In this document: positions 13,585-41,300 of the stretch, piece by piece
Layout: each line of letters begins with the position of its first letter
How positions within the stretch are numbered: position 1 is the first letter of the stretch
Source of the DNA: Auanema rhodensis
Taxonomy: Eukaryota; Animalia; Nematoda
Assembly: GCA_964057225.1 (NCBI GenBank)
Contig: OZ059897.1
Location: forward strand, 13,950,001-14,014,000
Reading direction: 5' to 3'
Length of the DNA stretch: 64,000 bases
Translations under genes and position numbers: made by a program
Notes under the pieces: model-generated
What the model was told of the DNA's origin: nothing
Database searches by the model: none
The model's input: only the letters and a program-made list of their open reading frames with translations

Positions 13585-16500
13585 TTATGAGAAATATTTG
13601 AAGAATTTCTTAGTTGATGAACAACATGGACCAGACACTGAAAAAATAACAATTTTTTAGTTTTAATAATAAAATTTATGAAAATCACCTAATGAGTTCG
13701 CTATTTTATTTGATACAGAACCAGCATCAGCGTCTGATGTTACAACGTAAGATGAACTTGGTGGTACTAAACCAGATAATGATCCGTTTTCATCTAAAGA
13801 TACAGCTATGACTGTGTATCCAGCCTCTATCAAGTTTTGAGTTGGTGGATTAGGAACATATTTACTAAAATAAAAAATTAGTTTATAATTCTTAATATTC
13901 TTAATATTTGCCTTTGTCCCATAACTATAGCTGCCCTGGTACGATTCGAAGTTTTAGCCATGTTTATTGCGTATTCCATAGCCCTGAAAACATTATCAAC
14001 TTATAATTATTTAATCACGCATTGATAAAACATCGTTTTTTTCATGCATTGTTTTATTATTTTTTTAATATTCAATTCAACTTACGATGTCATATCCGGT
14101 TTGTCGCCATCTACCAGTGCTTGATTCGCTTGCAATGTAACGTTAAGTGCCAATGGGGTTCTGTATTTTTTTAAAGTTTCAAAATAGAGTAATGAAACAA
14201 AAACCTGATATTGTCCCAAGATAGAGGAACGGACGTATAAGCATCAGTGAAAATATATGGTAATAATATAATTCGAGTTGTTATGCCGTTGAACTGATAT
14301 AGTTTACTACTCAAAAGTTCCAAAACATATCTTATAGTTTTACCAGTATCCTAGATAATGATTGTTATACTCATGAACAAAATATAATTTCAAACCTGCC
14401 CACTTAACTGCTCGTAAATAACAGCTATATCACCTTCGAACTTACAGCCGTTAGGACAAATAGGAGCAGTTGTTGTTGATGTTGATACGGTTGGCGTTGA
14501 AGTGCATTCACACACCGGGCACAATGGGGTTGTAGTCGGGATTGCGGCCGTTGTGGTCGTCGAAGGAGTTGTGGTTGTTGAAGGAGTTGTGGTTGTAGAT
14601 GGGGTTGTGGTTGTTGAAGGAGTTGTGGTTGTAGATGGAGTTGTGGTTGTAGATGGGGTTGTGGTTGTAGATGGGGTTGTGGTCGTCGAAGGAGTTGTGG
14701 TTGTAGATGGGGTTGTGGTCGTCGAAGGAGTTGTGGTTGTAGATGGGGTTGTGGTTGTTGAAGGAGTTGTGGTTGTAGATGGAGTTGTGGTTGTAGATGG
14801 GGTTGTGGTTGTAGATGGGGTTGTGGTTGTAGATGGGGTTGTGGTCGTCGAAGGAGTTGTGGTCGTTGTGGTCGTCGAAGGAGTTGTGGTCGTTGTGGTC
14901 GTCGAAGGAGTTGTGGTCGTTGTGGTCGTCGAAGGAGTTGTGGTTGTAGATGGGGTTGTGGTCGTCGAAGGAGTTGTGGTTGTAGATGGGGTTGTGGTCG
15001 TCGAAGGAGTTGTGGTTGTCGAAGGAGTTGTGGTTGTAGATGGGGTCGTGGTCGTCGAAGGAGTTGTGGTCGTTGTGGTCGTCGTAGTAGTTGTGGTCGT
15101 CGAAGGAGTTGTGGTTGTAGATGGGGTTGTGGTCGTCGACGGAGTTGTTGTCGAAACAGATGAGGTTGAACAATATGTTTGCTTATTGCCTAAAACCAGC
15201 TCTATAGTTTTCATTCGGAAAATACCATAACTTACAGAATATATCAGCAATGGATACAGAAGTATTGAGAGGATCGTTTAGATATGAAAAGTTGTATTTG
15301 TCATTAGTAGCTAAAGGCTCAAATTTATCATTCATTGAAATAGTAACAACTTTGTATCCTATGTTTTGTAATGTGTGGCTCATTTCAATCGCTTGATTAA
15401 CTTGACTCGAGCTTTAAAATGGAAAATAAAACATAAATGCTTTGATATAACTTACTCATCTCCAATAATGATAACACCTTTATTTTTAGTTTCAGCTTGA
15501 TCCAATGAAAATATATAATCTAATCCGCTGAAATAATAAGTATTCACGCTGATCGATGTTAGTATAAACTTACTCAATGATACTCGGATTTGTGAATTTT
15601 TTTTTAGCCTGGAATAAATTATTTTTGACTCCAGTAATATTATATATATTCCTGAAGTTTTAAAAATTAGAAATATCATTCGTTTTAGAAAATTGTTACT
15701 GTATCAAATTATAATTGGGTTTTGGAATATATGCAGAGGGTTGCTCATAAGGAACCAACATAATGCGAGTAGTATGTCCGTCGACTTCATAGTTATTTCC
15801 TGGATAACGGAACAGAGTATCAATGAGTAGAGCTACTTTATTTAAGTACTAAACATGAAAAAAGTATTTTTATTTGATGAAATAAGCCAAACCTCGCTTG
15901 AAGAAGTACTTAACAGTTCGAATGTTACAGCGAAGTCTCCTTCACAACTTGTCCTTGTTGGGCAATCCGTAGTTGTAGTTGCTGTGGTTGTGGTTGTAGA
16001 CGGAGTTGTGGTCGTCGAAGGAGTTGTGGTTGTAGACGGGGTTGTGGTCGTCGAAGGAGTTGTGGTTGTAGACGGGGTTGTGGTCGTCGAAGGAGTTGTG
16101 GTCGTTGTGGTCGTCGAAGGAGTTGTGGTCGTTGTGGTCGTTGTGGTCGTTGTGGTCGTCGAAGGAGTAGTAGTTGTAGACGGGGTTGTGGTCGTCGAAG
16201 GAGTTGTGGTCGTTGTGGTCGTCGATGGAGTAGTAGTTGTAGACGGGGTTGTAGTCGTCGAAGGAGTTGTGGTCGTTGTGGTCGTCGAAGGAGTTGTGGT
16301 TGTAGATGGGGTTGTGGTTGTAGATGGGGTTGTGGTTGTAGATGGGGTTGTGGTCGTCGAAGGAGTTGTGGTTGTAGATGGGGTTGTGGTTGTAGATGGG
16401 GTTGTGGTTGTAGATGGGGTTGTGGTTGTAGATGGGGTTGTGGTCGTCGAAGGAGTTGTGGTTGTCGACGAAGTTGTGGTTGTAGATGGGGTTGTGGTCG

Positions 16501-17446
16501 TCGAAGGAGTTGTGGTTGTAGATGGGGTTGTGGTTGTAGATGGGGTTGTGGTTGTAGATGGGGTTGTGGTTGTAGATGGGGTTGTGGTCGTCGAAGGAGT
16601 TGTGGTTGTCGACGAAGTTGTGGTTGTAGATGGAGTTGTGGTCGTCGTAGGAGCTGTGGTTGTGCAGTCATCTGGTGTACAGAGTCCAGTAACATCGTCT
16701 AATAAGCATCATTGACATCAAAAAGTAATGTTAAACTAACCTGATACTGTTACTTCTGTTGTTACGTTTGAAGCCTTAAGTTGCTTCTCCACATTGGAAG
16801 AAACATCTTGAGGACCATTCGATGGAGGTCCAACTTGTGCTCCGAAAGCGAAAGCTATAACAGAACCATCAGCGCCTTGCCTATAACATTCAAATTATAA
16901 TAATTTATTATTTACATGTAAGAACTAACACAAATTTTGTAACATCAATAACCATATGTTGATTATTAGAAGGTTGAGCATCAAGTTGTGATGCTACAAA
17001 AGCCAAAGCTTTTGAAGTTGTCACAGGTATAAGTGATTGTTCTAACTAAGTTACAAAAACTATATTATAAAACTATAAAAATTGTTCTATAAGATACCAA
17101 TTTGGAAACAATTTGAGATTGTTTTGCAAATTCTGGACTCGAAGTATTAGCTAATGCTGGTGACCAGGTTAATATATTTGCACTTATTCCAGCTTGTAAG
17201 TTAAATAATTCTGCTGAGCAATCATTTGTACCAGTATTTGGGCATGAGCCTAAAAACTATGTAAAAGTGTGAAAATAAATTTTTGTTAATTGATGAAAAA
17301 GAAATATCATAGTCATACTAAAAATTGTAAAATTATTATAATCTACCTTTAGAAGTACCAAATACAATAGCTAGCACAATACCAGTAACACCTAAAGCTA
17401 CTCCAATAAGGAATACGGCTAATGATAGCGGATGAACGCGAGGCAT
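13585..17446 (-). CDS. Membrane-anchored mucin-like glycoprotein: N-terminal hydrophobic anchor, SEA-like domain, two [PSTTTT array + VWA-like domain] modules
   Basis: Start MPRVHPLSLAVFLIGVALGVTGIVLAIVFG; SEA-like segment LANTSSPEFAKQSQIV. Two Thr/Ser/Pro arrays are each followed by homologous Cys-flanked domains (CEGDFAVTFE..TTRIMLVPY versus CKFEGDIAVIYE..TTRIILPY). Last exon ends ...KYFS*. Domain names are inferred. Confidence 0.8.
14550..15150 (-). repeat. Coding 18-bp tandem repeat (PSTTTT)n, array 2
   Basis: Alternating units CCATCTACAACCACAAC(C/T) and CCTTCGACGACCACAAC(C/T), with 9-bp insertions. Confidence 0.95.
15970..16665 (-). repeat. Coding 18-bp tandem repeat (PSTTTT)n, array 1
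   Basis: Same DNA unit variants as array 2. Confidence 0.95.
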
Positions 17447-18011: not shown

Positions 18012-20719
18012 TTAACAAAGGCCGCAACTTCGAGCACAATTTTTCCTTCTTATTTCGTCATTGTAGAAAGGATCAGTGCACAAACCATTTTTCACATAAT
18101 TAGGGCAGCTAAAATAAATTTTCATATTATTTATTAATATTAAATAATATACTCTATAACTATTTCTACTATTCAACCTATTATATAATTTATGTATACC
18201 TACTATGAATATACTAAAAGAAAGAAGAAACAGTTGTTTTATACGGTATTTACATCTAGCATTTAAGACAAGTTGCTGAGCATTTTGAAGAAAACCAAGT
18301 TTTGTCACAATGTTTTTTGAATAATGAACAACTGGAAGTAATTCGGTTTCTCGAATGAATTTAAATATACTAATTATCTTTCTATAAACTATATTATCTA
18401 CGCCTACATACTAATTACCTATTTCTTATCAATATATTACCCTATTAATATTTATTTAATGACTTACTAGGCAGCATTATCTTTACAGCTGTCGGATGAT
18501 GCTCCTGGTGTTGGTGAAGAGCTTTTGACTGAAAGTTTTATAAAGATTTGCAACCTTTGGAAGTATACCTGCACGGTATTCCACTTGTCCTTGAGTTTTA
18601 CCATAACGATCATAAAAGATCACGGGAACAAGATTGGAAGTTGAAGTGAAGACTCTACCCTTGTCAACATTTGAGCAGAATCTGTAATGAACATAATCCG
18701 ATAAGAGCATTATTTATTTTGATTTTTTAAAATTATTCTTGAAAATTACATTACCTGTATCCAGTTAAAGCAGGGTCGGCTAATGTTTTTATTTCAATTC
18801 CACCATATACACATCCATCGGTAAAAACACCGGCATAACCATTAAATTTGATTTCTATTTTCTGACCAGGTTCAGTCTGAACATGATATCATGATATGAA
18901 AGCATTTTATTGTTTCTACCTTGATCCAATACGTACAATAACTGAAATCATTTACTGTTTTTCCATTTCCTAATGCCATATCCAATCTTTTCCAAGAATC
19001 TGTGGCTGATAATTCGGATCCACATCCTGATGGCTAAAGCATTGTAAATGTACTGATTATTTAGATCACAAATTTTTGAGAAGCAAATTCTTGTAGTTCA
19101 ACTTACTCTAGCGTTACATAAGTTTCCACTATATCCTGCAGGACATACACACACATTACACCTCTTTGGATTTGGAAAACCACCATTTGCACATTTTGCT
19201 GATGTTTGTTCTGGGCATTTGGCTGCAAATAAAGAGAATTGAAACTTTTAGGATGTTTCAATTGTTTTTTTTTAATCATAAATATTGTTGCACAAATGTC
19301 ACCTTTGCAATTATAATGTCTATTAATCATATCCGTATCATAGAAGCCAATAATATGTGAACCCATTGTATCTTGGAACTTTATATCTTTAGCAATCATT
19401 GTAGGATTACGATTAGATGAAGCACTAAACTGATTAGCATCATAACATTGTTCATTAATTGAATTAATTCTACCTTTTGCCACCATATTGCATAACACTT
19501 CCATAGTCGTATGGTAATCCGTAGTTGAAGTTCGTACTTTGAGTTTCCTTTTGGAATTGACTGACCATGTGTGGCTAAAATACTTAAGTTATGTCTATTA
19601 CTTATAGTTGAGATAGTACTTGTATATTGTTTATATTTACAGTAATGTATTCGTCACGATCATGGCGTGATTGCTGATGGAAAAACCCAAGGGCGTGACC
19701 AATTTCATGTCCAGCTATTCCAACCTAAATGAATTCGATAAGGTGGACGGTTTTTATGTTAACAATACAGTATCACAGCCGGCGCCTAGTGATAACTCTT
19801 GAACACCTCCAATCATTCCGATATATGAATAACAACCTTCCCCTCTGAATACTTTTATTCTATTTGCAGCTGAAATAAAAGAGTTTTAACAATTCATTTT
19901 CTATTATAACCTGTTGCGGTCTGAACAAATGTAAGACATGTAGCGCTAGACCAAATAGAAGCAGCCTTTTGGAAAACTGTTCGCATATTTTCAGCTGAAA
20001 TCTCAGATGCTTTTGATTTTGATTAAAACACATACTGCAAGAACTATCAAACTCATAGTTTACTATATTGTCTTTCCAGAGAAAACGTGGGTAGAATCTA
20101 GAAGATGGGGTTTATTGAAAATTGAGCAAATTGAATGAAAAAAAGCGTTCTTTACCTGTCACGATAAGCTTGTCTTTTGGTTCGAGAATCTGCTGTTTCG
20201 TTTACTTCAGGCATTAAAGCTTCAACTTGTTCACTTAAATTCAAAATAAAATATATGAAATAAAAAATATTTAACTTACTCAGTCAACATAATATCATTT
20301 TGATATAAAAATTCATCAACTTGGGCATTGATGTTAAGATCTTGAATAGTATCACCATTCTTATTAACAGTCTCAATTGGTTTTACACGATAATCCTATA
20401 AAACAGAAATTGATCTTTCAATCAAAAAATTATTTGATATTACTTTCAATTTTTCAATCATTTCCTTGTTTGCTTTATCAGTGACAGTGAGCTTGTTAAT
20501 AACTCTCTGTTTGAGCTTTTCTAATTTATCTTCAACGTTTGTTATATTATGATTAAATTTCTAAATTAACATGTGAATATTCAAAACAAAACAATATATA
20601 TGTATTACCTTTGAAAATGAATCACGTCTATGCATTTTTTCTAAATCAGAGAAGAACCTGAAGGGATTGAAGGCGCCAGTAAGACACACGAGGCATAGAA
20701 AGCCGAATACGAGTCTCAT
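18012..20719 (-). CDS. Astacin (M12A) zinc metalloprotease with prodomain, EGF, CUB and ShK domains (NAS-31-like)
   Basis: Signal peptide [16 protein letters not shown]; RTKR/QAYRD activation site; [19 protein letters not shown] zinc motif; YGSVMQY Met-turn; [15 protein letters not shown]; CUB; C-terminal CARSCGLC* ShK. Confidence 0.93.
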
Positions 20720-21482
20720 AGCTTAAAACTATATAGATAACAAAATTTATAAAAATTAACAAAATACTAATCTAAACTATTACAAGATAGCTTATGTTTT
20801 CAGAAAGCCTTTATATAAGTACCATGTTTAATCAGCTGAAAAAAAAACTATTAATGATATCATTCATTGTTCAATTTTAGACAAATGACCCTGTTTGGCC
20901 CTCTCGAATTAGTGTCAACCACCCTCATTTATGTTTTCTCAGTCTTCTTTACTCTTGTTCATCATCCTCCCCCTACGCAAATCATTTATTATTATTTCTA
21001 TCTATCTCATGATTACAATACTCTATTTACAAGTAATTGCTTTAGGCTATCGCTATTACATTCAAAAAAATTCATAGAGAATAGTAAACACACAAAGACA
21101 GAAGTTAATGTAGTATTTATTCTTTCATCAAACATCATTAAATTTTTTTTAATCAAACAAAATAGTTTTTAACTTCTTGAGAAACAGAATAGTTTTAAAC
21201 TTCTTTAAGTTATTTTTTCTATTTTGTATTGGCTATTGATATATTCATGTATGTATGTATGTATATATAGGTATTCATACACATATGGTATATGTACATT
21301 CGTTTATTATATTAAAAACATTGCATAGGTAATGTTTATTTATCTCATCACTTTTCAATATTTTTAAAATTAAAAACATTAAACAGAACAAATGAACATA
21401 AACGACGAAAATTGTCTTCAAACGAATCCATCTAATTAGCATATCAACTAAGATTTCAACGCATTTCCATTTATTTTCGATA

Positions 21483-22480
21483 ATGAAGCGGTTACTTTTT
21501 TCAATTTTATGTTTTGTCTCTGTAAGTGATACATAAGCAAAAAATAAAATAAATATTTATATTTTATTTTTTATCTCATGATTATTGAAATTTTTCAGAT
21601 AAATACTGTTTTTTTAAAAGCTGTCTCTAGAAGATCTGTTTCCAGTGATAATCATATTGCTTCATCTTCATATTATTCTTCAGACAATTATACATATGTT
21701 TATATAGATATACCTGATATAACTGAAAGGTTATTTAGATATTTAATATAATCACTTAAATATTTTAGTAGAAATTATGGTTGGGGATTGATAGGATCAT
21801 TAGGAGTTTTTCTTTTAATATGTATTGCAGCTTGCATCATAACAACTACTATTCAATCACAATGTAAGTTCAAATGTCTCATTGTTTTTCACCATCTGGC
21901 TTCTAATATATTCATTTTGATATCGTTTTCAGCAAAAAATAGAGATGTTATTGCAGAGGTAATAAGATTTTAACCTGTGTTTATTTATGCCTTGCTTATA
22001 CCAATAATTACAAGGAAGGTGCTGAAGTTGTGGAAACTCATCCAAAAGACTTGGCTAAATATAAACCAAAAGGGCCCCTAACTGTTACTGGTCTTGGTAA
22101 CACTATGGTAATGTTTAATTTATCTGAAAAGTTCTTCAGGCGCTTTTGAACCTGGTGCCACCAAATGAAGCTTTCCGTAATTCTAATACTATAGTCTCAC
22201 CATGGAACTCGCCTAGATGGTGGCACTTGGTACGCAGGCGTTTTTATTTATTTCAACAACTTGTTCAAAAATATTCCTTTTCAAAGTAATTTTTAAAATT
22301 TTAAGTTCACATGTTTAGGCACATCAGCTTGATAACGATAAATCACAATCTCTGCGCCGTATTGAGTTTGATCCTGAGCAAATAGAGCTGTTTGACATCG
22401 GAACACTGGTGGAAAATATTGTTGAAAAGGTAAAATTTATAGATATAATGAAAAAAGCTTTATCCACTATTCAGCCTTGA
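21483..22480 (+). CDS. Small signal-peptide, single-pass membrane protein of unknown function, 8 exons
   Basis: MKRLLFSILCFVS...; TM segment GWGLIGSLGVFLLICIAACIITT; downstream exons (EGAEVVETHPKDL..., ALLNLVPPNEAF...SPRWWHL, AHQLDND...IVEK, P*) join in frame through GT-AG introns. Confidence 0.75.
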
Positions 22481-23760
22481 ACAAATCTGTAAAAATAATG
22501 TTTGCCATAAGGTTCCTAAATAATTTTTATTATTACTTAGTTTCTGTTTCATTGGCTTTCTCACCATTTCAGTAATAACTAGAACTTTATACAATATCAA
22601 TAGTTAGCATTATCATTTACTACAATGATAGAATACTGCAAATCCGAAGTAATAAAAAAGAGATATTACTATATATGTATATATAATATATACTATATAT
22701 ATATATTTATATTTATATGTACATGCTTGTACATGAGATTGAAAAAAATGACAAACAATTTGGAAAGCTCGTTAAAAATAAATAAGATGATTTTGTTTTT
22801 CTATGTTAAATTATAGCTAATTATTATTATAAACATAATGAAGCACCACTTTTCCCTGTTCTTGTAAAATATTTTCTTATGTGCTTTACAATTTCCAAAA
22901 AAATGTTATAAGTTTATTGAAAAATTAAAAATATTCTAATTTAAAATATATGATCTTTTTTTTTCTCATCTGATTTGTTCAGAGAAAATGAATGGGAAAA
23001 TACCTTCAAAGTTTCAATTAAAATTACTAATGAAAGTTAAATGAATTTCATGAAGAAGTGAAGGCTCAACGATCACATCTATAAAATTCCACCGCTGATG
23101 TCTCCAAAGTTAAAGTTTTTACCCGCATCTGTATACATTCACAACAATTTATATATATACATATATGCATATGTATAATAGTTGCAGAAGAAAATTGTTT
23201 TCGAATTTATTTTTGAAAGTAATAATTTGTTTTCGTTATATAGTGTTCATTTGCCTAGCACCGTATAAGGTTGGTCTCACTAACTATAAAGAGGAAAACT
23301 TGGAATCTATAACTAAAAATAGCCTCAAGCATTCTAATTAGGTAAGCTATTTCTCAGATTTCGTCTGTGGCAAGCAGAATATACGAAAACTAGTATTCAA
23401 GAGACAAGCTTCACTGCTTGTCGTATGTTGTCAGCTAAAACGACAGGTCGGAGACATTGATGCAGCCATGTTGGATGCTTCTGAAGCTTGTACAAGTTCT
23501 TGATTTGCTTCATATTGCATATGTCGTCATGATTCTCTGACAGCAAGCATGGAAACACACATCAACCGCAGTCGTTATAGCAGAAATATGGCTTGAATTT
23601 CTTGTTATCACGTGTACATGAGTCAGTTTGTTCTTCTACTTGTTATCATCGTCATTATCGATATCGTCATCATTATTATCGTCGGTGGTTACTCCCGTCC
23701 GGAAGGGTACAGTCATATCTATAATAACAGATTGATAAAATTCGATCCGTAGGAAACTTT

Positions 23761-24614
23761 CTACCACTTCTTGTTTTCTCTTTCATCTTTGTCCGTTTCT
23801 TCACTTTCTTCACATAATTCGCTCAATTGAGAATCATTTTCACTGAAAAGAGAAGAAACTGATTATCAATAAGTTTAACGAGAGCGATTGAAATCGGATT
23901 TGGTTAACCTCATGACACGAAGATATAATTGAGAGAAGAAGATCAGAAAGGAAAACGTGCATGATGCCTGTTGACTCAATTGCTAAGGCGTCCGTCTTAA
24001 AATTCTGTCACCGATTCTTTGTCTCGTTATTTTCCCCCAAATTAGCTCAAATTCAAAATATCACTTTATATATATATGTGTGTATATATACTTTATTATA
24101 TAGTTATAATTCATCTATGATTTTATATAAATTCTTTGAACAAAACAAGGAAAGACAATTGAAATGTTTGTTTGATAATGAAAAACCTTAGCAACTTGTG
24201 TCACCATCTTGTTTTTGAAAAAAAATTGAACACAAACTTTCCTTTTGACTTATTGTTTTTGTTTCTAACAACAACTCGAAACATCAGCAATTTAAGAACA
24301 GATCTGTCAACTACTATTTCTAGTTTTCATTTAAAAGTTTCTGTCGCAATCAAAGTAAAGTCAGTTGTAGAGCAGTTACCATCAAGTTTTTAGAAAATAG
24401 TTTTCTAATTTGAATTGAATTAAAAGTAAAAAATGAGATTATTCTCAAAAGATAATATTAGAAAAATTGTTTCCCTTGAATGAAGTATTAAGCAAAAATT
24501 TTGGAGAAAACGTTTATTTTCCAATACTTTTCCTCCTTAATGAAATTAACGTTACGGCTTCTTTGTTTTGCTATTCAGATTCTGATCATTAGATGAATAT
24601 TCAATTTTCAACAT
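23761..24614 (-). CDS. Possible tiny acidic protein (~46 aa, 2 exons) or spliced non-coding transcript
   Basis: Exons 24614-24556 and 23842-23761 join in phase 2 (MLKIEYSSNDQNLNSKTKKP-ENDSQLSELCEESEETDKDERENKKW*). TTCAG acceptors are present. No recognised homology. Confidence 0.35.
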
Positions 24615-27600
24615 TTTGCCTTTGAGTTCTCTGAATTTTTCAAATATGAAGCAATGTGGCTAGAAAATGATTCAAATTTAAATTGTTCTTCTTCGAATCT
24701 AGGAATTGTTCCAATCAAATTGTGAACTCTTGAAAAGTGCTTAAGCATCCGTGTGTAGGCGTGTATCATTTTCTAAACATGGAAACTTACATCATACAAT
24801 CGATTCTTGACACCAAATAAAGAGAGAAGGGAAGAGGTAATGATAGGGTGACAAAAGAAAAGAGAAAAACTGTCAAGAGAACGAGAGTACCAAGGCGAGA
24901 AGGAGAGAGAGAGAAAGAAATTAAATGTTGAAAGAGATAGTGAGAAATAGAAGTGTCTCCACGGCTCCAGCTGTCAGAAGCAGTTCAGTGTCAGACAGAA
25001 GCAACACAGTGACGACGGCGGTTCTGCTGTCAACGATAACAGTTCCTGTTGTTCTCAGGAATGCTGAAAAGTTTCGCAGCTTCGAGAACTTTTCTTGAAA
25101 TTTACTTTCAACATTGACCTTTAATACAACAATGGTATGCCATTTCAAAATAAATTCATTTAGATATTTCCTAAAATAGTTTATATTTTTTTGCTGGCTA
25201 ATATTACAAAAGCTATTACATTCCATTTCTCTATTCCATCTCAGCATTTCTATATGTTACGTTGCCTGTCTTTCGTCTACAATCATTACGATAAACATTT
25301 ATTGAAGTTACTGTGCTATGCTTTGTATCAAAGTGACAATCTAGAGAAGAGAATAAGTCAATAAAAAAAAAAGTCATGAGAGACAGTTTCTAAAATTTGG
25401 GTATATTACAATAGATGAAGCGGTCTCAATCCCTTTTTTTTTCGATTGAACCTTTACTATGATACGACCTTCTTACCTTTTTCTACCATACCCCTGTGTC
25501 ATTTTTCTTTTTATGAAATATGTATGCATGCATATGTATATACTCATGTATGTAAACACTAATTTGTATATATACAGATTTTTTTTTCCATTAGGGAGGA
25601 AAAGTGAGTATTCTATTGAGGAGAAAGGAACACAAACCAATATACAGGAGCGCAAGACAAAATACCAAAAAAAAAGAAGAAGAATAAGAAGAAGAATTTA
25701 TTATATATGGGTTTGTATTGCCTCTTTTCATTTTGGCTCTATTCGACTACCCGCTCTGTCTGTTCTACTGTGTGTCTCTTATCCCACTGTCTGGCAGTCT
25801 CACATTTGTTCCATATCTATTCCTCTTCAACTATTTCTTTCGTTCTCTTTCCTTTGTAGTCAATTCTATATACTATCGTTCTCAGTCCTGTATCTTAAAT
25901 GATGATGTATGAATTGCTATGTTCGTCGTGTGCTCTCCTGTTTTATTACACAGTCTCTGTATAACATTTCTCGTCTTTCGTATGAAATATGTGTCAGACA
26001 GCCTACGTAAGTATATTCTCTTTTGGCGTATATTTTCTTATATGGATATATACATATTCAGAAACTATATGCATATCAATCGTTGCATTTCTCAATTTCG
26101 GCTTTATTTCGTTTTTTTTCCGTTTTCACATATATTTCGTTTCATTTGCATTCTCCTTTTCATCAATTGATTCTGTTACATTTTATTTCATTTTTATAGT
26201 ATTTCTACTATTCTTCCTACTTCCATCTACATCAAATGTTATCAAAAAAAGCTTTGTACTCATTTTATTCTAAATGGCATAAGCACATATGACGTCAAAA
26301 TTATGACAGTTCTATTCATCGACAACCATCTATAACATGAACAATTATTACCGTTTAAGGCTTACATGCATCCAAAGAATCATTATCTTCATCCTTCCTG
26401 GTCTTCAAATGTAAATACCTCTTTCTCCAAAAAAAACAGCACAATAATTAGCTTGAAAACGAGTTTTTCTTTTTCTACTCCATCTAACTAATAACTATCC
26501 TCACACCTTTATAAAGTGGCTCAACAACCATAGATCTGGAAAACCTGCAACCCTATTAGAGAAAAACCTTCAAAGTAAGCAAACACTTCACTTCATCGCC
26601 AATTGCCAGTATTTTGAACAACTTTAGAAAAAAATTATTTTATTCCTAGTTCAAAGCTTAGTTTCTCTTTCCCACCTCGTTTTTTGGCCATTAATTGCCT
26701 AGTCATGACTTTGATTTTGTCTAAAAAACGAGGTAGGGATAATAGCAAAACCAACTTACCTTGATTTTCTTCAAATCGTTTTTTTCTTTTTAATCACATT
26801 TTTTATATCTCTTTACTCTCAATAAGATTTCTTTAATTCAATCTCATTTACTAAATTTATCTATTTAATAGCTTAAATCAATTATAAAGCAATCCTTCTT
26901 CAAATCATTGAGATGTTTTTCATCAGTTTTTTTTATTTCCAATTACTCGATCATCATTCAAGAATGCTAAGTTAATGCTCATGTGAATTGGTTATAAATT
27001 AATTTTAACTGTACGCCCACCATTATCGTGTTTTCCTTTTTCCACCAATTGTGTTATACAATTAGACGAATTTCAATAGCTCCTTCTTCATAATCCGGAT
27101 TTCAATTCATTTCTTTATATACTGACAGACAGAACGGTTGTCTTTCGCTCCGGCGTCATTTTCCGACGTCATCGTGATCATCATTCATCTCATGATATTC
27201 AGATGTGCACGGCAATAAATCCGTCCTTCCAAAGCCATTTGACCTTCTTGGAACAAAGATTTCACTTTTGAATTCATTTTTGGAATATATAAGTATAACT
27301 TCTATTTACTTTGGGGCTTTACAATTTTTCTTTTAAAGTCATATTTTTCATTCATTTTATGAAAAAAAAATTCGATTTGTTTTCACATATTTTGAATGAT
27401 TTTAAACATAATTCTATATTTTTAAATATAATTCTAGGTTTACAAACAAATAAATACTTATTCTCTTTTTTTTCTAATTTTCTATGTTTTATGAACAGAT
27501 AATTTTATTTTTTAATCATCTTTTCATTTGTCATTCATTCATATTACCATCCAACACATGTTTCGTTTTATTACGAACTTTTTTAATCTTTCTGAACACT

Positions 27601-28097
27601 TTAGTCAGCATTCTTTTCTTTTCAACCATTTTTTTATTATCCTGCTTCAATCAATCTCTCAGCTTATTTACGGTTACTTCTATATTTTAGTTCCATTCTC
27701 GCTTGAAATGCTTGAAATAGAAGAAAATACCATGGTCAAGATCATTTTTTCTTTTTTTTAGCCTTGTTCAATGAGATTCCGCTCTTTCGATGAATGATGT
27801 TCTTAATGCTCTTCAGCTGCTACTGTCTTACGAATTCATTATGTTTATTCTTTTTCAGGATATCCGGAAACTGACCAAAAAATGGTCCTGAAGTGATTGA
27901 TAGATTATTTGTTTATTTTTCTGTCGCTATTTATTTGATTATCAAGCTGCCAGTCACCCAATTCTTGTTTTTTTTCCTCTTCAGGAGTTTTTTCCTAGGT
28001 TTATAACTTGAAATATGCATAAGATCAATGAAATCTCCTTCAATGAAACTCATTACATCTTAACATGATATGAAAATTTTGGAACATAGAATTGATT

Positions 28098-28171
28098 TGA
28101 GGTAGTATGTGTAAGTCAGCGGAGTTTCATTTATAATTTTTTTATCTGAATTTCTCTCGTACTGCTTCATA
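28098..28171 (+). ncRNA. let-7-family pre-miRNA (miR-84-like); predicted mature 5p UGAGGUAGUAUGUGUAAGUCAG (28098-28119)
   Basis: let-7 seed GAGGUAG; the first 13 nt match my recollection of C. elegans miR-84. The 3' arm (28146-28169) pairs nt 1-12 contiguously (with G-U) plus an inner UCAG/CUGA helix. The 26-nt loop contains GGAG. Confidence 0.78.
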
Positions 28172-31100
28172 TATATGTGATATTACTTTCATGATCTCCT
28201 TTCTCTCACTCTCGTTTACTTTCTCAATTTCTCTATATTTCTTTCATACTGACTTCGCTTGCACACCCTCCCCCTCTTTATTCTTCTTGTATATATGTAT
28301 ACACACATATGCACATATTCACGCTAACACAGATTTTTCTTTTTCAATCATCATCGTCTATACTCTCTCGTATACCTTAATACCCACCTATATCATAATC
28401 TAGTTTCTAAAACTGACGAGAAGTAATGGTAAAGAAACCGATATGTGCATTTTTCATATTGAAAAGCTTTTTTTTTGCAATTATAATTTATGTTAAAATG
28501 AAGTACTACTCAATTGAAGTATGAATTCTTTTTTTGGCTCTTATTTCAATTAATCTTAAATTCTGATGAAAGAAAGATTAAGAACATTGTTGGAAACATT
28601 GAGTCTGAATTGCTTTCAATATCTTTGATATATGATTTTATATATTCTTTCATATTACCGTCAACTACTTCGCATACTCCTGACATCTGTTTCTTCGACA
28701 TTTTTTTTGAAAAATCTGTTTCTATGTATACACGTTGTCATGTCGTTGTCATATTCATGTAATGGCATTAGTTTTTGGAAGAAATGAAGTACTACGTGTA
28801 GAGAAAATAAGATGCATAAAACTGACTTTTTCATTGAATCTTTTGGAACTTCAACATAAGTCAATTTACTCACAGAATTTAATTCTTCGTAATCAAATAG
28901 ATAGTTACGCATACATACGTGTATTGGCAAATGTTCATGATACACTGATCATGGTTCTTATGTCATCTTTTTCCTCGCTTTCTTGTTCTTCTGCCATGTT
29001 ACTACCCTACGTTTGACATCGTAGTGTCTGATGTTGTTTAAGCAAACTTGCAGAATACTGCACAGCACGACGGCGATCACATAGGTATTCAGACGTATTC
29101 GAATGTCATTTGATTTAAAGAAAAACTTTGGTGGGTGAATATGTTTTCTCAATCTTGCTTCACTTATTCTTTCTTTCGAATCCCCCCCCCGCCTCTGTTC
29201 GCTTATTTTATTTTTAAACACTTTACAGTATAATTAAATAATCATATTTCAAATTTCTTGTCATCAATTAACTTTGTTTATGTACTTTCTACCTCATATT
29301 TCATTTGTCTTCCGTATATCAACTATTATGAAAGTAATGAACACAAAATTACAAGGAAGTAATATTTTCTTTTTTTTTTGCAAAAGTTTTCAAATCTGGT
29401 TCATGAGCCTCCGATCATTGATGCTAACTAAATGATTATCTGCAAAATAGTTGAAACACAAGTATATACATACGTCTATCAGCTATATCACATGAATCTT
29501 TATACATACTAGTTCTCCAGAATCCTGACGACACGTTAAGCATTATGGTGATTTCATTCCCACTCAGTTAGCTTGCGGACTGATTCGTACAAATTGTCAC
29601 TTGAAGTGGAGAATATTTTGTTTTGCCCTGAAGGCATTAGAGCACAGATTTTTTTCTGCTGTTGCACATGCTTCATCTTTTTCTCTCCATTTGTCACGGT
29701 CGTCAGCTTCTTTTTGCTTCACATATTTCAGATTTCATCTTCATTTGCCTCATTACGGGTAGAGCTGTACGTTCCAATTCAATGTCCATAAGTGCTTAGA
29801 CCAGCTTTGTCAGTAACCGGATTCTCTTTCCTTTTATTTCTTTTTTTCTTTATCCCCCTCTCTGTTTCTCCGTATCTTTCTATATTTCCTAGTATGTGTA
29901 TCAACTCTGTCATGCGTAAGATTACTGCTAACTAGGACTGTGCATGAGTGTCTGGCTAGTTTGCAATAGGTTCTCAATGACTTCGTCTCAAGAATCCATA
30001 GGAGCAATTATGTCCCACAATTGGTACTGTCTATATACAGCTTAATCCTATGTTATTAATTTGTATTTTGTTGTCTTGTGTAGGATGCTCATGAGCAGAA
30101 TCATACATCCAATTAGGGAGGATCGTGGCCTCTATTCAGACGACTTCAGAACGTCATCTGTCAGCCCCAAATGTTTTGCTTATTAATCCTTAGCAAAGCC
30201 TTGACTATAGCCCTTGTGAACGATCCGGCTGTCTCCTAAGACATCTGTCTTCTTATTTTGGATTGGGATAGGCATTCATATTCTCGCGCCCTACCCTACC
30301 ACGTTCTTAATGAAAAATATTTCATTAATATCAATAGAAATTGATTATAAACTTCATAAACTTTAATTTAAATTTTATATTTCAATGTAAAAAAATATAT
30401 AATATATTTTTATTTTTGAACTATATGCAATGAAAAGTACAAAACACATTTTTTATGAATGTCCTGCCACAAACAGCCATTATCTTCGATTAGCTGATCT
30501 CAATCTAGCAACTATTTCCTTGTTCTGCTTCAGTAAATTTTCATTATATAGTATTCTTCTTTCTTTATTTCTTCTGAAGTTTTTTATAAGTTTCTTTTTC
30601 TTTCAAATAACTATCGTTGTTCTTCTTCATTAGATACAAAACCTTTATTTGAGTTCAACTCACGTCATCTCATCATGATGAACCATTAATTGTTGTTGAT
30701 CATTCGTCTTCTCTTTTTACTGTTTCTTCAATTCATGCTTATATCCGGCTCGTTTGTCTTCCTTCATCGCTGCCTACGCTAATCAATCTGCTTATTGTGC
30801 CATTGTCACCTGGTCAACAGTCGATTGTATCTTCATCTCATTAGTATGTGCCTTGTCCTCTTCATATTTCTACTTTGCTTTATTTCATTTCTTCTCTGAT
30901 CCATATTGTCGTTCTTCGTATAGCTCGTGTAGCTGGAGTGCTTGTGTGCTGTGTTGGCATAAGCTTCGGCGTCTACTTCTATTGTCTATCCACCAACCAG
31001 ACTCCTTAATAAAAGGCTATTGCTATGTTGAGAGCCACCCAATTCCTCTCTTTATATCAACTACTTACTCTCTCTCCCCTCTTTCTCTCATGCTCACCTC

Positions 31101-34100
31101 TCTTAATTTCTCTCCTTCCCTTTCGTTTTTTGTTAATGCCTTTATATAAAAATTTTTCACGCTCTTTTCATATCCTTCATTTTGCTTAGGATTCTCTTGG
31201 TACAATGTATTTTATTTTCCAAATATGAATACAGACATATTCTCACGAACGAGATCTTCATTGATCCATCTATAGATTTTCACCAAACCAATTCATGTCG
31301 CGTACAAACTTCCAGTAGCAAAACATCATTTGCTTGAATACATGTAGTCAGGCTTGCATACAAAAAATCTTTCAACGGAAGTCTACGTGCTAAACCATTG
31401 TACAGATAGACGTACATACAAACACACATAGCAGCAATCACTTTAACATCTCCGTCGACTTTACAAGCATCATCCTCTCGTTTGCCATCTCGTTGACTAA
31501 CACACTGCAATCATCGTTCCATCATACACGCCACTAGTCACCAACACCATCTTCATCTCTATGTCTTCAACACGTCTTCTCAAGCTTTAGCTGCTTCAGT
31601 TATTTCATAAAACACTCGACCGCATATGCATGTCCTCGTCTGCGTTTTAGTAAATGGTGAAATAGATGGAATTCCATTTTCTTCATATCCTAGCTGCTCT
31701 CGTAGCACACGGCTTTCTATTTCTATGTCGCGTTTTGTGCTATATTCTTTTTTTGTCATGCACGGAACCTGGCTCACATAAGACCAAATGCCCTCCTTTT
31801 CAAATCTGATGCCCTTAGAAGACAACTTCAGTTACTATTGCTGAGACTACTAATACTCCATTTACGATTATTTTTATTTTTACTAAAATTATTACTAAAC
31901 TACAACTCCAATGTTATTTTTATTATATATAAGATTGATAATTGCACACATTTTGCCTATACGTCATACTTATTTTACATTTTGTTTTTATTGTTTTTTT
32001 TCCTTCTTCTCAGTTTGGTACCTCTCAGTTCCAAAACCACTCTGTAGGAAATGGGATTCAAGGTTAAACGTTTACTTCTCACGTGGACATTCTCAATGAA
32101 TATGTTCAAGGAAATGTGCCTTTTTCAATCTTTGCAAGATATATTTCTTTTCGTTATTTATTTTTTTTGCATAACTGACGTAAAATGACAGTAAAATTTG
32201 AATAATCCATTTCACAAATGCTTCGTGTCTTCTGTGAATGTATAACCTTGTAATTTTTCTCTTAATGTTTTTATTCTCACTGCAACCATATTGCCATGTT
32301 AGTGCTAAAGCTTAAGAAAAGTCTGAAAGTCTGTCTTTCCTTCTGTTCCTTTTGAGATTTAGAAGAAAATGTGCTAGCATTCAGAGCCGACAAGCAGTTT
32401 ATAAAGACTAATTGAAAAATCGTTTTATGTGACAGAAATGGACCATAGAAAGCAGGAGGAATAAAGAATTTGTATGACCGAGAGAGAGAGAGGGAGAGAA
32501 TTATAGAAGAAAAAGAGAGATGAAGACTGAGTAAGATAAAGCTCAAAAAAGACGAAAGAGGTTGAGATTTAAGAAATAATAAAAAAATAGTGCAAATGAT
32601 ATAGAGTCATATGAATTAAATGTTTTTCGCTCTATGTGCGTAAAAACAAAACCAGGCAGTATAATCGTAATATACGAAATTGAAAAATCGGTAAAGCTTG
32701 GGGTTGTTTAAGGAAATATGAAAAAAGGAAATGGACTATAGACTACCTAAAAAGTATAATTCGTGTTAAAATGAATTATTTCATTTTGGATGAATTCATA
32801 GAAAAAAGTGAGATTGAAAGAAAAACTGCGCAATGAGGAGATTTAGGGGAAAGGAAAAATACTATAACCGGAAAATGGAGAATGATACACATGCTCAGAT
32901 TAAGAAACAAACAAATCTTGAAACAGCTTCTTAAAAAAGAAAAATAAGAAGGTGCTAAACAGAAGAGAAACGATTTTAATATTTTTTGCATTATGTTCAG
33001 ACGCCCCAACTTAAATTAGTTTATAATTTTCATATCTGATGATGTGTACACAACAAATTTAATGATTTGTCATATTCTAGAACATGCTAGTTGAAAAAAA
33101 TTATTTTCGAAACTCTTTCTCTCTATTTTTTACTTATTCTCTCTCTTTTTCTATCTTTCCATCTTTTACATTTCGCCTAACTGTCTGATTTGTAATCTGT
33201 ATGCTGTCTACACGCTTTGTTACCAACTCTCAACAACTGGCTTGTCTAGACATGTTTTATCGTCAGTGGTTTTGATCTATGGATTCAAAATAACAAGAAA
33301 GCAACCTTTAGATCACTCTAATCTTAGATTTTTAACATTCTTTTGCGTGTATTCTTTTCTCACTCAGTCCATATATAGGTTGCCCTTGATGTAACTAAAT
33401 TAAAGATGGTAAATATTTTGTCTTTACCCCAGTCAGTCACGAGAAACTTCGTTCAACAACTGTATTGAAATAAGTACAGTTATATCTTGAGACTTCTAAT
33501 TTCTTGAAGTCTTAATTATTTTTAATAGTTTACTTAATAGTTTGTTTGTCGTACTTAAATGGAATGTGGTTTCTTTGATCTATAATTTTAAAATGTTTCT
33601 TATTTCAGAGTAATAGCGATTCAGCATTAACTGTAAATATTCAGCTTGTAAGGTGTATGACAAACATGGTTCCTCTTTTCTTTTTTTTTTAATTTTATAT
33701 ATTATATTTACTATCTATATTGAAGTGTTTTTCTTTCTCTTCAACTTCCAGTTTCGTTAACCTGTTCTTTCAAAAACTTTTTTTTATAAATTACCAAATC
33801 TGTTCCAATTATTGCGTTCACATGATTAAAAGCGTCATTATCATAGAAATAGTACACACATCCTCAATATTGTTTTATTATAAACACATTCAAGTGAAGG
33901 TGTTCCGTTAACACAAGATCTCAAGATATTGAGAAGAAATGAACTAGCAACGAGGCGTATTTAAGTCGTTTTTGCTACATTTTACTAGTATTCTCTTAGT
34001 TATCTTCCATATTTTCTGCTGATAAGATTAACTACATAATCTGACAGTGTTTCACATTTTTCAGTAAAATCCCTGATCACAATATCTGCTTTTGCCCTGA

Positions 34101-35778
34101 GAAAGGGCATCACAGCTTTGACAAATGTCAATAATAGGTTTCAAATGCATCGTTTCATGTCTACTACAACCATATCTCTTCTTTTCGACATTTCTCTCTC
34201 TCTCTATCTCTCTATTTTAGAATTTTTCACTATTCCTTTTTTTCAACCTTACTTGTATGCTTTCCCAATTTCAGCCTTCAATGCTTCTTTTTTCATATAT
34301 CCCAATGACTGGTAGTGTATCCACAAAGTCATGACTGCTCGTAAGAAATCTGAGAGTAAAAAGCCAGAAGAATTTGACTAGCGAACATGAGATATCCGGA
34401 TACAAGTGAAGTCAGAGTGAATCCGTCTTCATCGTCCTTGTCTGCAAAATTAAACATAGGCCGATCAGTTTCCGTTTTAAAGATTCCAATCATTTCATTG
34501 GAATATATAACTTCCCATTTCAAATTGATATGATTATTTTGCTAAGCACACATCTGGATAAGAATTTACTGAACACGGTACAAAAACAATTTTTATCAAG
34601 CATGGTCATTGTGTTTCTCAAGATTATAGTGGTTTGCTAATAATCTCATCTCATTCACTTATCATTCCTTGTTGATTTATTTCTTATTCTGTTCTTCATT
34701 TCTTGTTCTAACTAAGAGCATGAACCATCAAATTACAATAGCTTTTATTGAATTGTGTACAAATTATTGTGATAACCGAGTTTTATTCATGTGCATATAT
34801 CAACTAGTTGGATGTCATTAGTGATTTATCTACGATAACTATATTTGTTTCTTCAAAGCAACCGCGGTTTCTGACCTTTATAACAACATTAGTAACGTTC
34901 CTTATATGGAAATCACAGAAAAGGCAAACTGCGTGTGTTTAATTGAGAAACCAAGCGAGCTGAACGAGATTCGTGTCACAACGAAATCAAGGCTTCAATT
35001 ACATAGCAGTGGTAGCATTTCAATCTTTTCGCCTTAGTTAGAAGTTGGTAGCAATTTTGGACAACTGGCCTTTCACCATCTTCCGGTATTTGGATGCATA
35101 GTCAAAATCTTCTAACAGCAGCAAAGAATGCACGATCTTAATTCCTATGATGTTGAAGTTTAATATGGATGTCCCATTATTTTCTAAATATAATAAGCTT
35201 CTAAAATATATACCTGTGGGCTCTTTTCTAAATGTGGCTTACCACGGGTTACCACGTACACGGTAGGTTTCTTTATATCACCAACCGGTTGTGAATGAAA
35301 GTTCTGACTCCGCCAGCATCTCCTTTTAATCGAAATCTTTGTATTTAATCCTCAGCCCTCTTTCTAATATTACGGCGTTCTTTATATATTTATACATACT
35401 ATGTGGTCTTCTTCTCTTGTTATCTCTTTCTATGTCTCTTTTTACTGAACAGAGAAGAAGAAGAAAGAGGAAAATAGGAGAGTGAGAGAGAGAGAGAGAG
35501 TTGGATTAGAAAAGACTTCTGGGTATCCACATTACGTCCCTAGAACAATCTAAACCTCTCTGAATCTATCTATATATAAAGCTGACTGCGATTTCTCTTC
35601 TCCTGCCACTGCCATCAAAATATTGCTCTCATGTTTCGCGTACGCTTATGGCTTGAGAGAGAGGAAGAGAGGGAGGAAAGAACGAAAGAAAAAGAGATTC
35701 ATGATCCAACACCCATACAGCAGCTCTTCGCTACTGAACTGACTCCCTCAAACACATCACAATATTTCTTTTCCCCTT

Positions 35779-35782
<4 letters not shown>

Positions 35783-35844
<62 letters not shown>
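35783..35844. repeat. (TC)n microsatellite
   Basis: Direct run. Confidence 0.9.
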
Positions 35845-35849
<5 letters not shown>

Positions 35850-38306
35850 ACTCTTATCATGTGGCTAACTGCTTTTCTCTTTACATCTTTTTTTTTGCAT
35901 TTGTCTTGTTAAATCTGCTGCTTCTTCGTTTCTTTCGCTTTGGAACCAATAAACAATCCACGGACATTCGAATTTTTTCCTCACAATTATTACTCTCCCA
36001 CACATGAGAAAACAAAAAGTGTCTGCTTCTCAATCCTTCAATCTCTTCAATCCTCACTTGTCTGCTTCTTTTTTACTTCTGCTTCACTCGCTTTTTTTTA
36101 CTTTGAAATCCTAATATATACTAATACAAGAGACTTCTTCTCGATATGTTCTTCTATCCCAGTTGATATCCAGAATTTATCTATTTAATGTCAATTGCCG
36201 TTCTTCGTCTTATTCTACACTTACGCAGACATACTCACATGCATATACACATGCACACACGCCACTACGCGCTATCGATCCCGAAATGAATGAGGGGCTT
36301 GATTCCTCCGCCCTGCTCTGCGGCTTTCAGTTCACATGACTAATACTCTTTACTATATATGGCTATATTCTTTTTCATGTTCCCCAGACTGCTATGTTCC
36401 TGCCGTACACCAATGAACTCTAGAGCAGTTCAAGTCATGAGGAAGCTCTGAATTCGTACTCACGAAAGTTGGTAGCTAAGGAAATTAATCACTTTGAATA
36501 TTTAATTCCCTAGTTCTGAACAATTCTCTTTGTTTCTACAAACCATGCGGATCATTTTAAGTATTTGTACTTTTAAAATATTTTTTTGCATAAATTATTG
36601 GCGATTAAAACGTTTTAGTTGACCAGTTTCTGAACCTGTCGCTGAACGAAGCATTCACGTATATCAGTCACGTCATTTTCATTTTTAACGACGTCGGTTC
36701 TGGTTGTCGAGGATTGAAAACATTTCTTTCGCTTTCTTTCATGTCCCTAAAACTGTATTTTACTGATTGTATTCATCGCGACAAAAATATTACAAAATTT
36801 TTTAACAAAGATAATAATTGGTCAAAATAGATTCAATACAATTTCAATACTATTTTATGTTTTTATTTCACTATTATTCAAAATTACATCTAAGGTTTAA
36901 ATAAAAAGGAAATCAAAATTCTCAATCAAATTCCTTTTATAATTTAATTATCATAATATCATTTTATTTCTTTAATTTCGAAAGATTATCTTACAACTAC
37001 ATAATTATACATCAATTTAAAATATAATCAGGAATTATCTATGTCAATTTGTACACCAATTTCACTGATTCATCTTTTAATGAGACCATGGTTCAGCTAA
37101 AAAAGGTTAAACATTGAATAATCGATATAAAATTAGTTTATATATTTGCACTGCTTTTACAAGCGGCCCTGCCTACTAACAACGTCCGCCATTTTCATTT
37201 TACGCTTATCTCTATTTCTTTCTCTTTATGTTCCCCTCTTTCCTTCTGTCTCTCACTATTTCTCTCTCTAACTTTCCGGCTCTGCGTCATTGCAAATGTT
37301 CAGTATTATTGTTACCTTTATGAAACAATTCCCTTTTTCTAATCATTTATCATTTCGTCAACAACATTGTTCTTGCACACATAATTTATATTAAATATTT
37401 AGTGTCTTAGGCGAATTGTATCATTCGCCTTCATTTTTTTTAACTTTTTCCTTTGTATTTTTCTTTTTCATTCATTCATCACAAATAATTTCTTCCTGAT
37501 CGACTTTAAGATTTTCTGCGCACTACTTATCTGATATTTGTACACGGCTCATAGCTTTTCCCACACCTTTCCTATTGACTGCTCTATCGTGCTTTGGTTT
37601 TCCTTAGGTTAATAGTCCTTGAAATAAGTTTAACTGTTGCAAAGATCGAAAATTAGTTCAATTTTTTGTTTTTCATTTCATATATGCCTGTTTATTTTTT
37701 AACTCAAGTGTTCACAGTTCTTATCATCATCATGGTCTATTTCGTATACAGCTTGTTTTGATCACCTAACATTCGATTTCTCTTTCTTTATTTTTTGGCG
37801 TCCCTGCACCACTTTCTGTTATTAAACAGTACACCTAATAATTTCAAATATCCATCGCTTCGCCTTCCATATTTGAAGTGTACCTGTTTTGCGTGAGTTT
37901 GCTCAAGCCTCAGTGTAGGCTCTACTTATACAAACAAAGAGCTCTGTGCTTCTACTTACCTACATGTAGCAATAGAACCTATGTCATTTCTGGCTTTTTC
38001 TTGTCCACATTTCCTATATGTTTAACCATTATACTACCATTTTCCTTTTTACTTTCTCATTATTCAGATTCTTTTCCATTTTTCGACATTATGTTTTGTG
38101 TTTTCTGATCAATAATTGATGATTACGTAGAGAAATCAACTTCTAGTTTTTATACGATTAACATTTGTTATTGTGATCTCTCTTGATTCTTCTTTCTTCG
38201 ATATATATATATATAAAGACTACCTTAACAAAAATTATGTTTTTCAGCTTATCTCTATAATAAGGTAACGAGGGGTGAAGAATATCGTGGGTAGTATCCC
38301 CTCGCG

Positions 38307-41300
38307 ATGACAGTAGTGGCCAGCTACGGTATGGTTCTATGTGGCAACTCCGATGACCACCAATATCGCTATAGGGGGAAAATAGAAAAGTTTGACGATT
38401 CGTTTGGAAAATTACTAAAATGTTTCATTTTAGAGTAAAATTTGGTGTTCCTATCAATGAAGCTTTTGCTCATGATATTCCAGCTACATTATTGGTAAGT
38501 TTTGGTTTGAAACTTGAATTATAATTCATTATATAGATATTATTATTAAAAGTTAATAAAGAAGGACCATTAAAGAAAGATATATGGAGGGCTCCCGGAA
38601 ATCAAGCTCAGGTAAAAATTTGGATTTGTTTCGGAAAAGTTATTTTTGAATTCAGGTTCGAAAATTATCGCATATTATGCAACATGGTCGGCTTGTGAAT
38701 ATTGCCAATTTTAGCGTATATACAGCTGCTTCTGTAATTAAAGTGAGCTTGTTAATATAATTTTTTAATAAATAATAAGCTTTAAGAAATTTTTATCAAA
38801 GCTTCCTGGAGGCATTTTCGGTATTGAGAATGAGCAAACCTTGTTCAACAGTTCAGTGAATAATAATGATGCTGATAAACAAAGACAAGTGTTTTTCAGG
38901 TTCGTTTATATATTTTTTATTTTATAATTTTTTAGTGAAGTAGATCATATTTCAAGTCCATAATGACGTTCGATTATCTTTCTCATTTCTTTGTATTTGA
39001 CATGACAACATGAAATTATTTACTTTGTACCGTTCGACAAGCGTTCTTCAGTCTAACATTTTTTTTGATAGCTCACAATCTATTAAAAAAATAATTTGAT
39101 TCTTAGAATTCCTAGCATTTGTAGTACTCTCGTAAGCATGAATATTTTTCATATTTTTCAGAATATTCTGTTCACTTCCTGTTCCTTCTCAACATTTATT
39201 AGTTCTTCTTTTTGGAACATTTCGCATGGTTGCTGATTCTGCTGATTCTTTTGGTACTAAAATGACGCCTGATGCTATTGCTATATCTGTAGCACCCTCA
39301 CTTTTTCATTCTTGTATTCATGATGGTAGACAGGTATGTCTGTGTTCAATTGTTGTTTGAAATATTTTGTTTTTTAGGCTAAGGTTGAAGATGTTCAACG
39401 ATTCAAGTTAGCTTCTCAAGTTGTTAAATCAATTATTGTGTCATTTGGTCATACGAACCTCTTTCCTCGTGAATGTTACGAGTTTTATGCAAGAATTACG
39501 GGACGCACCTTAAGGGTGGATGAAAATTGGCTATTCACTTTCCAGTATCCATCAAGTAAGTTCTGTTTGTTTTTGATCAATTAGATTGCTTTAACTGTCG
39601 CAAATTTAAAAAACTAAAAGACGACCAGTAGAGCTTTATACATGGCTTTTGTAAGATTAGGCGTTTCTGAATATTTTCCGAATATTAAATCAAAAACACA
39701 AGCAATAGTTGCCTGAATCACCTTCTTAGATAAAGTTAATTGCGATATGTGAGCTAGTTTTATTCAATTGACCACCAACAGCTTAGTGGCATAGCACTAG
39801 CAATTTCCACGTTGTCCCGTTTAAACTTAAATTATCCTGTTTTGGATATCATGCGTATTAGCTCTCTATTTAATAATAGCAATGTGTTACTCCTTGAAGC
39901 TTTGTGATATCCAGAATTATTTTTTATGACCGCTCATAAGTCTCTTGCTCACCCTACTTTATAAACTGTAGCTTAGTTACAAGTGCATGTGTGTTTCTTT
40001 TGTTGACGTGTTTCCTAACTTTAGTTTTGCATGTTCGTCTGGAAAACACTGACTGTTTCAGTCTGTGCTGATTGATGTATTTCTACTCTATCAGTCATCA
40101 TTTCGGGTTTTATGGATCTTCTTATATTGTTTGTTCATTGGAACTATTGTTGTCATTCCTACCTAAAGAGGCATGTAAGTCGATCTCGCTGTCTTTTATG
40201 TCGTCTTAGTTGCTCCTCAGTAGTTTATGAGTGTGACTCTACTCGGAAGCGCTTTTGTGAAATTTTTTCCTTAAAAAAAATAAAAATGTATTTGGTTAGT
40301 CTAACCGTGGGTGTGAGGTGTTGTTGTTCACAGATCTTTCTTCTCCTGCCTTCTCCATGATGGCTGCAAAATGTGCTGGAGCTTACTCGTTGGCTGCCCT
40401 TCATTTGGAACACGAATCGGATCAGCAACTCGACAGCTCTCGGAAATCTTCAGTTCAACGTACAGGATCTCTACATCGTCACCCCCTTGCTCACACTGCG
40501 GATCATCCTAAGCGGCCACCTCATATTGTTGTTGATGTTGTAGATCTGAAACAATCTATAAGTTGCGATTTTTAATTTTTTTTAGACTGCGCTACCTCCA
40601 ATTTGCCTGCTAATTGTTTTTCTGTCTCTTATCTTAATACTGAATCTATATTCTGTTCAATTTATACGAATTTATCTCTTGAATTTATTCCATATTTGTC
40701 TCTTGCCTTGAATTTGCATAATTCGTATCCTTTATTGTCTAAGCTCAATGTGCTCTAAATTGACTGTTTGCAAACAATGTTGATACGGCATCAGTTCTTT
40801 CTATGTTAGCAAAATTGGAATATTACTTCTAACTTTTACTGTTTTAATAATTAATATTGTTCAACAACCTCTTCCATGGTTCTTAAGACCGATTACTCAC
40901 TTTCATCTCACATGTCTCATAATAACTTTTGTGCTTCCTTATAACCATAAGATTAGGTCGTGATCTTGTTTTTATTGGTCAAAAACTATGATACGTGTAA
41001 CACTGCTATTCATTTATGTCTATAAATGCTCATAATATAACTGTTCCTTTTTCATCGTTAATGTATTGTGTAATTTAATTTAACTAGCTCACTCGCAATT
41101 AAGGTATGTTCATGCGATTGTTTTTGTTTTTCTCTTACTCATTTTTACCCTTTTTTTTTAGGAAGTTCTTCAAGACCGAATGTTGTGATTAGTGATTCCT
41201 CTACAACTGAGACACCAGTCTCTAATCACCCAATCGTTCGAAAATCAACAACAACTTCAAATAACAATCGTCTTAGTAATCGTTTGAGTAGTAGCGTTGG

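Follow-up and report, generated by a model that had tools for sequence, protein, structure and literature searches.

A putative let-7-family hairpin in the intergenic DNA of Auanema rhodensis is thermodynamically marginal and lineage-restricted

The whole stretch of DNA analysed here, which we refer to as the window, comprises 64,000 nucleotides of the genome of the nematode Auanema rhodensis, and it contains a candidate hairpin that had been proposed to encode a divergent let-7-family microRNA. This hairpin is found within a gene-poor region of ~16 kb (22.5-38.4 kb), with a gene for a 141-aa product on one side and a RhoGAP gene, located on the plus strand and starting near 38.4 kb, on the other. 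The first of these is a small gene (22024-22432, plus strand) that shows two exons by tblastx, is the ortholog of a 141-aa product of Auanema sp. JU1783, and belongs to no Pfam family. On the same side are also an astacin metalloprotease gene with EGF, CUB, and ShK parts (18015-20722, minus strand), counted here as the nearest gene and with CAI4232952/3 as its JU1783 ortholog, and a mucin-like Thr/Pro/Ser repeat made of PSTTTT units (14390-16715, minus strand), which resembles the repeat that comes after the JU1783 astacin gene. The neighbours of the hairpin had originally been described as chromosome-II-type genes, a description with a mixed outcome, given that the best C. elegans match of the nearest gene, the astacin, is nas-31, on chromosome V. 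Along the gene-poor region (22500-38400), the plus strand is pyrimidine-rich at 26-32 kb and at 34-38 kb, with a GC skew reaching -0.28 and an AT skew reaching about -0.2.

By direct reading, the plus strand of the window at 28098-28119 is TGAGGTAGTATGTGTAAGTCAG, followed by CGGAG, and the corresponding RNA, UGAGGUAGUAUGUGUAAGUCAG, would represent the putative 5p arm of the hairpin. This is exactly the 22-mer with a let-7 seed that the original prediction described. In the let-7 family, the mature 5'-arm product has GAGGUAG as its nt 2-8, and this motif is present in the DNA at 28099-28105, which corresponds to nt 2-8 of the putative 5' arm. The likeness extends past the seed, with nt 1-13 being identical to those of C. 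elegans miR-84 (PMC4628221, PMC2173595), an identity that had been overlooked. That the 3' half differs from the known members of the family had been recognized, and comparison with the published let-7c, miR-48, miR-84, and miR-795 (PMC4628221) bears this out.

The putative terminal loop (28120-28145, plus strand), placed from the sequence and the fold, is 26 nt long and AU-rich, and it carries GGAG at 28121-28124, which agrees with the 5'-side position described for this motif. The same motif had been brought forward as a possible LIN-28 site; it is indeed present, but it constitutes weak evidence for LIN-28 control, since GGAG is found in 4% of the 26-nt stretches within the window. The hairpin would be completed by the putative 3p arm (28146-28171, plus strand), where 28158-28169 pairs with nt 1-12 of the 22-mer, and 28146-28156 pairs weakly with nt 14-22.

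RNA folding gives an unbroken pairing of nt 1-12 of the 22-mer with 28158-28169, formed by nine Watson-Crick and three G-U pairs, each with a probability of at least 0.92, and pairing probabilities of 0-0.6 between nt 13-22 and the 3' arm. In the minimum-energy fold of the 74 nt (-18.4 kcal/mol), the loop region forms a small internal hairpin instead of the upper-stem pairs. A suboptimal fold lying 0.6 kcal/mol above this minimum pairs 20 of the 22 nt of the 5' arm and has a loop of 26 nt. There is no helix below the putative Drosha site, where the upstream 10 nt pair for 2-4 nt only, with a probability of at most 0.62. Compared with dinucleotide shuffles, the 101-nt stretch at 28085-28185 has a z of -1.3, and 22 of the 200 shuffled sequences fold equally well. 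Of 18,266 74-mers sampled from the window on both strands, 2.0% reach the energy of the hairpin, and 0.48% match this energy together with its arm geometry (13 or more of nt 1-22 paired with the 3' end). A 12-bp stem of Watson-Crick and G-U pairs, with a partner located 45-120 nt away, is available from 0.13-0.22% of positions.

A precursor of microRNA quality would be characterized by a duplex of ~22 bp, a basal stem of ~11 bp, and a folding energy well below that of shuffled sequence; what we find is firm pairing for nt 1-12 only, an absent basal stem, and an energy with a z of -1.3. The candidate hairpin is thermodynamically marginal. The proposed fold against a 3' arm at pre-miRNA spacing stands in so far as the helix between nt 1-12 and 28158-28169 exists, but the quality of this fold is not above chance at the scale of a genome.

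The seed 8-mer, TGAGGTAG, occurs three times in the 64 kb of the window, against an expectation of 0.92 from shuffling. The second of these sites (29289-29296, minus strand) has no hairpin (z = -0.13), and the third is located at 44868-44875, also on the minus strand. Extrapolating from 0.92 per 64 kb to the entire genome, whose size we take to be roughly 60 Mb, there should be ~900 or more chance seed matches which, combined with a fold rate of 0.48%, would result in several chance seed-plus-hairpin sites of like quality per genome. As for the letters that follow the seed, TATGT comes after TAG in 0.47% of cases within the window, and the combination of seed, hairpin, and TATGT extension would be met by chance at some 0.02-0.07 sites in each genome, with no discount yet made for the post-hoc choice of these features. 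The extension of the match to 13 nt, unlike the combination of seed and hairpin, exceeds the chance expectation.

At the gathering score, no Rfam family matches anywhere in the window, and searches of 701 nt and 101 nt at E values of up to 10 give no let-7-family match above noise. The only let-7-family model that aligns at all is RF00809 (mir-241), whose 11.5 bits (E = 4.6 on the 101 nt) compare with a gathering score of 63. Against the covariance models of Rfam for let-7, mir-241, and their relatives, the candidate thus stays below the gathering score. In the literature, we found no paper on the 19-mer and no small-RNA study of Auanema, and the preprint on DNA elimination in Auanema contains nothing about microRNAs. 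A scan of JGI metagenomes with the 18-mer returned five matches, all of them unrelated and coding-like, and none with a hairpin. The RNA-labelled run X13 has no contig on 26000-30500 and is uninformative for an RNA of 22 nt.

The syntenic region of Auanema sp. JU1783 was reached through the astacin gene, by a profile search with an astacin exon that led to a full-length Haemonchus astacin and, from it, to two JU1783 proteins. One of these, P0080 with its longer isoform P0173, matches the astacin of the window over a span that runs from the first residue as far as the CUB part, with 32-81% identity in tblastn pieces and the highest identity in the astacin catalytic exons. The JU1783 locus (L006), which spans 22.7 kb on the 445-kb contig CALQYR020007499.1 of GCA_943334845.2, is collinear with the window from 16.8 to 28.06 kb and includes the mucin-like gene, the astacin, the 141-aa gene, and non-coding blocks. 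Such collinearity marks the window as DNA of a congener or close relative of JU1783. The blocks common to both are located at 20851-20903, 23311-23362, 24536-24602, 24961-25060, and 27056-27144 of the window. The last collinear one, the non-coding 25-nt block TCAATGAAACTCATTACATCTTAAC at 28040-28064, matches L006 254-278 at 21 of 25 positions, is also found in a second relative (metagenome run X11), and acts as the synteny anchor; when the 1-kb target was shuffled 300 times, two of the shuffled sequences reached this score.

The hairpin starts 34 nt past this anchor, and the similarity of JU1783 to the window stops near 28064-28076. The seed 8-mer is absent across the 22.7 kb of L006, as is the 22-mer at up to 3 mismatches; 28090-28180 has no above-chance similarity to the first 1 kb of L006; and the 166 nt past the anchor in L006 hold no hairpin (z = -0.61). 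The anchor on which these comparisons depend is short, and L006 stops 253 nt past it. The block at 28309-28346 was considered as a right-hand anchor in JU1783 and rejected, its best match not being collinear.

The conserved non-coding element at 27056-27144 corresponds to L006 1056-1132 with 74-84% identity, is ~93-96% identical in the X11 relative, and holds the invariant 20-mer CTGACAGACAGAACGGTTGT together with ATAATCCGGAT. Conservation in JU1783 and in the X11 relative covers the 28040-28064 block but does not extend to the DNA on its right, and this block may be a regulatory site. At L006 40-95, JU1783 has CACGTG and ACGTGAC, with GCGGTTGG ~35 nt later; this arrangement has no window counterpart near the hairpin. 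A TRCAACCG/CACGTG start-site motif was discarded, as it occurs at chance level in the window.

The relative represented in metagenome run X11 is a closer one, being 85-95% identical to the window over its alignable blocks (26074-26438, 26939-27191, 27770-28002, 28878-29064, and 29993-30164). One X11 contig of 258 nt covers 28309-28346 together with 31 nt ending at 28071, skipping the 237 nt in between, although it is a single contig of low depth; judging by depth figures, this joining contig would contain at most ~188 unalignable letters, against the 237 of the window. For 28072-28198, there is no X11 contig at 80% identity or above. The 237-nt stretch that encloses the hairpin (28072-28308) is unalignable in the two relatives and has alignable blocks on both sides. 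In both cases, similarity ends within a few bases of 28071-28076, leaving the hairpin inside a lineage-specific stretch. The suggestion that the element is lineage-specific is borne out in this way, as it is missing at the JU1783 syntenic site. In other nematodes, the let-7 seed is absent from the C. elegans nas-31 locus and from the related astacin locus of Mesorhabditis spiculigera, at neither of which synteny is kept.

Two further observations concern this stretch. A transposon or MITE origin was rejected, with neither a further copy nor terminal repeats in the window. In run X12, the end of a 439-nt contig matches 28192-28264 (73 nt) perfectly, whereas its other 366 nt were not placed on the window; the junction falls near 28191, just to the right of the hairpin, and could be explained by structural variation, by a different haplotype, or by a chimeric contig.

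A conserved ortholog of mir-84 or let-7 is expected to rank with the best-conserved blocks between genes. At this locus, conservation extends to the blocks nearby but not to the hairpin, either in L006 or in the X11 relative, and by this comparison of sequences the candidate is therefore not a conserved let-7 or mir-84 gene. Its identity as a microRNA, the central claim of the original prediction, finds no support in a hairpin that is marginal, has no basal stem, gives no Rfam match above noise, and is unconserved in two relatives. The candidate is at best a young, putative member of the let-7 family, and a look-alike is somewhat more likely.

We cautiously favour the second of these, that is, a lineage-restricted marginal hairpin that looks like a microRNA and whose lack of function we infer. 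This reading follows from the weak upper stem, the absence of a basal stem, the z of -1.3, and the lack of both model support and conservation. The 5' arm would happen to begin like miR-84 and let-7 and, most likely, would not be processed into a functional microRNA. Such a look-alike could have originated either through the chance occurrence of a seed next to a 12-bp inverted repeat, the intergenic DNA being AT-rich, or as the decayed copy of a let-7-family hairpin. However, the 13-nt identity with cel-miR-84, the GGAG of the loop (a further 4% coincidence), and the suboptimal fold that pairs all but two of the 22 nt of the 5' arm speak against a look-alike. Moreover, by analogy with C. elegans mir-793/794/795, a lack of conservation would be compatible with a real young gene, and the absence from the relatives is judged from a short anchor, from a locus that ends 253 nt beyond it, and from a single low-depth contig in the case of X11.

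It is possible, even if we hold it to be the less probable case, that the hairpin is a genuine young microRNA of the let-7 family, restricted to this species and derived from a recent mir-84-type copy on the 237-nt stretch. Its 5' arm is then predicted to be processed to UGAGGUAGUAUGUGUAAGUCAG, sharing the targets of the let-7-family seed. Such a gene would account for the identity of nt 1-13 with cel-miR-84 and for the perfect 12-bp helix across the seed half, and it is favoured by a near-optimal fold that pairs 20 of 22 nt around a 26-nt loop, by an energy and arm geometry that 0.5% of local 74-mers match, and by a joint chance expectation well below one per genome. The stretch also looks inserted or replaced with respect to the two relatives, which would fit a recent duplicate. 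Conversely, a z of -1.3 and the lack of a basal stem for the Microprocessor speak against this reading, Rfam offers no support, and the element is not conserved in JU1783 or in the X11 relative. The more specific proposal of a newly born paralog, consisting of a mir-84-type copy carried on a 237-nt species-specific insertion beside the conserved 25-nt element of the 16-kb gene-poor region, seems rather unlikely to us.

That the 12-bp inverted repeat forms part of something other than a let-7-type microRNA, be it a hairpin cut in another register (with the helix of nt 1-12 as lower stem, the cut would fall ~11 bp up and leave the let-7 seed away from any 5' end) or a DNA element with a structural or regulatory role beside the 25-nt block conserved 34 nt upstream, is very improbable, given an upper part paired too weakly for a miRNA duplex, a stretch unconserved in the relatives, and neither a repeat family nor a second copy within the window.

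At present, the case is mainly a caution: in an AT-rich genome, a 12-bp inverted repeat next to a let-7 seed is to be anticipated by chance. If the microRNA were real, it would enlarge a family already known and would open no new kind of biology. It would provide this Auanema species with an extra heterochronic microRNA, absent from its congeners; in a nematode with three sexes, the let-7 family of developmental timing would gain one lineage-specific member. Duplication would in that case have given birth to a microRNA gene very recently, which would be relevant to work on the heterochronic genes of Auanema.

Among known systems, the Caenorhabditis mir-241 precursor (RF00809) resembles the candidate in its seed arm and, on the 3' arm, in the complement CUGCUUCA, although nothing is similar beyond the seed and the complement that the seed imposes. 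The closest counterpart in mature sequence is C. elegans miR-84, published as UGAGGUAGUAUGUAAUAUUGUAGA (PMC4628221, PMC2173595). The two are identical over nt 1-13 (UGAGGUAGUAUGU), and the mature sequence of the candidate is placed on the 5' arm; they differ over nt 14-22, which read GUAAGUCAG in the candidate and AAUAUUGUAGA in miR-84. Besides, the candidate hairpin is far weaker than a processed precursor should be, and a congener lacks it at the syntenic position. The remaining comparison is with C. elegans mir-793, mir-794, and mir-795, which are poorly conserved members of the family with the let-7 seed. Whereas these are backed by cloned or sequenced small RNAs, and the candidate is known here from DNA alone, they share with it a let-7-type seed and a restriction to one lineage (the sequence of miR-795 is given in PMC4628221), and they represent a precedent for young members of the let-7 family.
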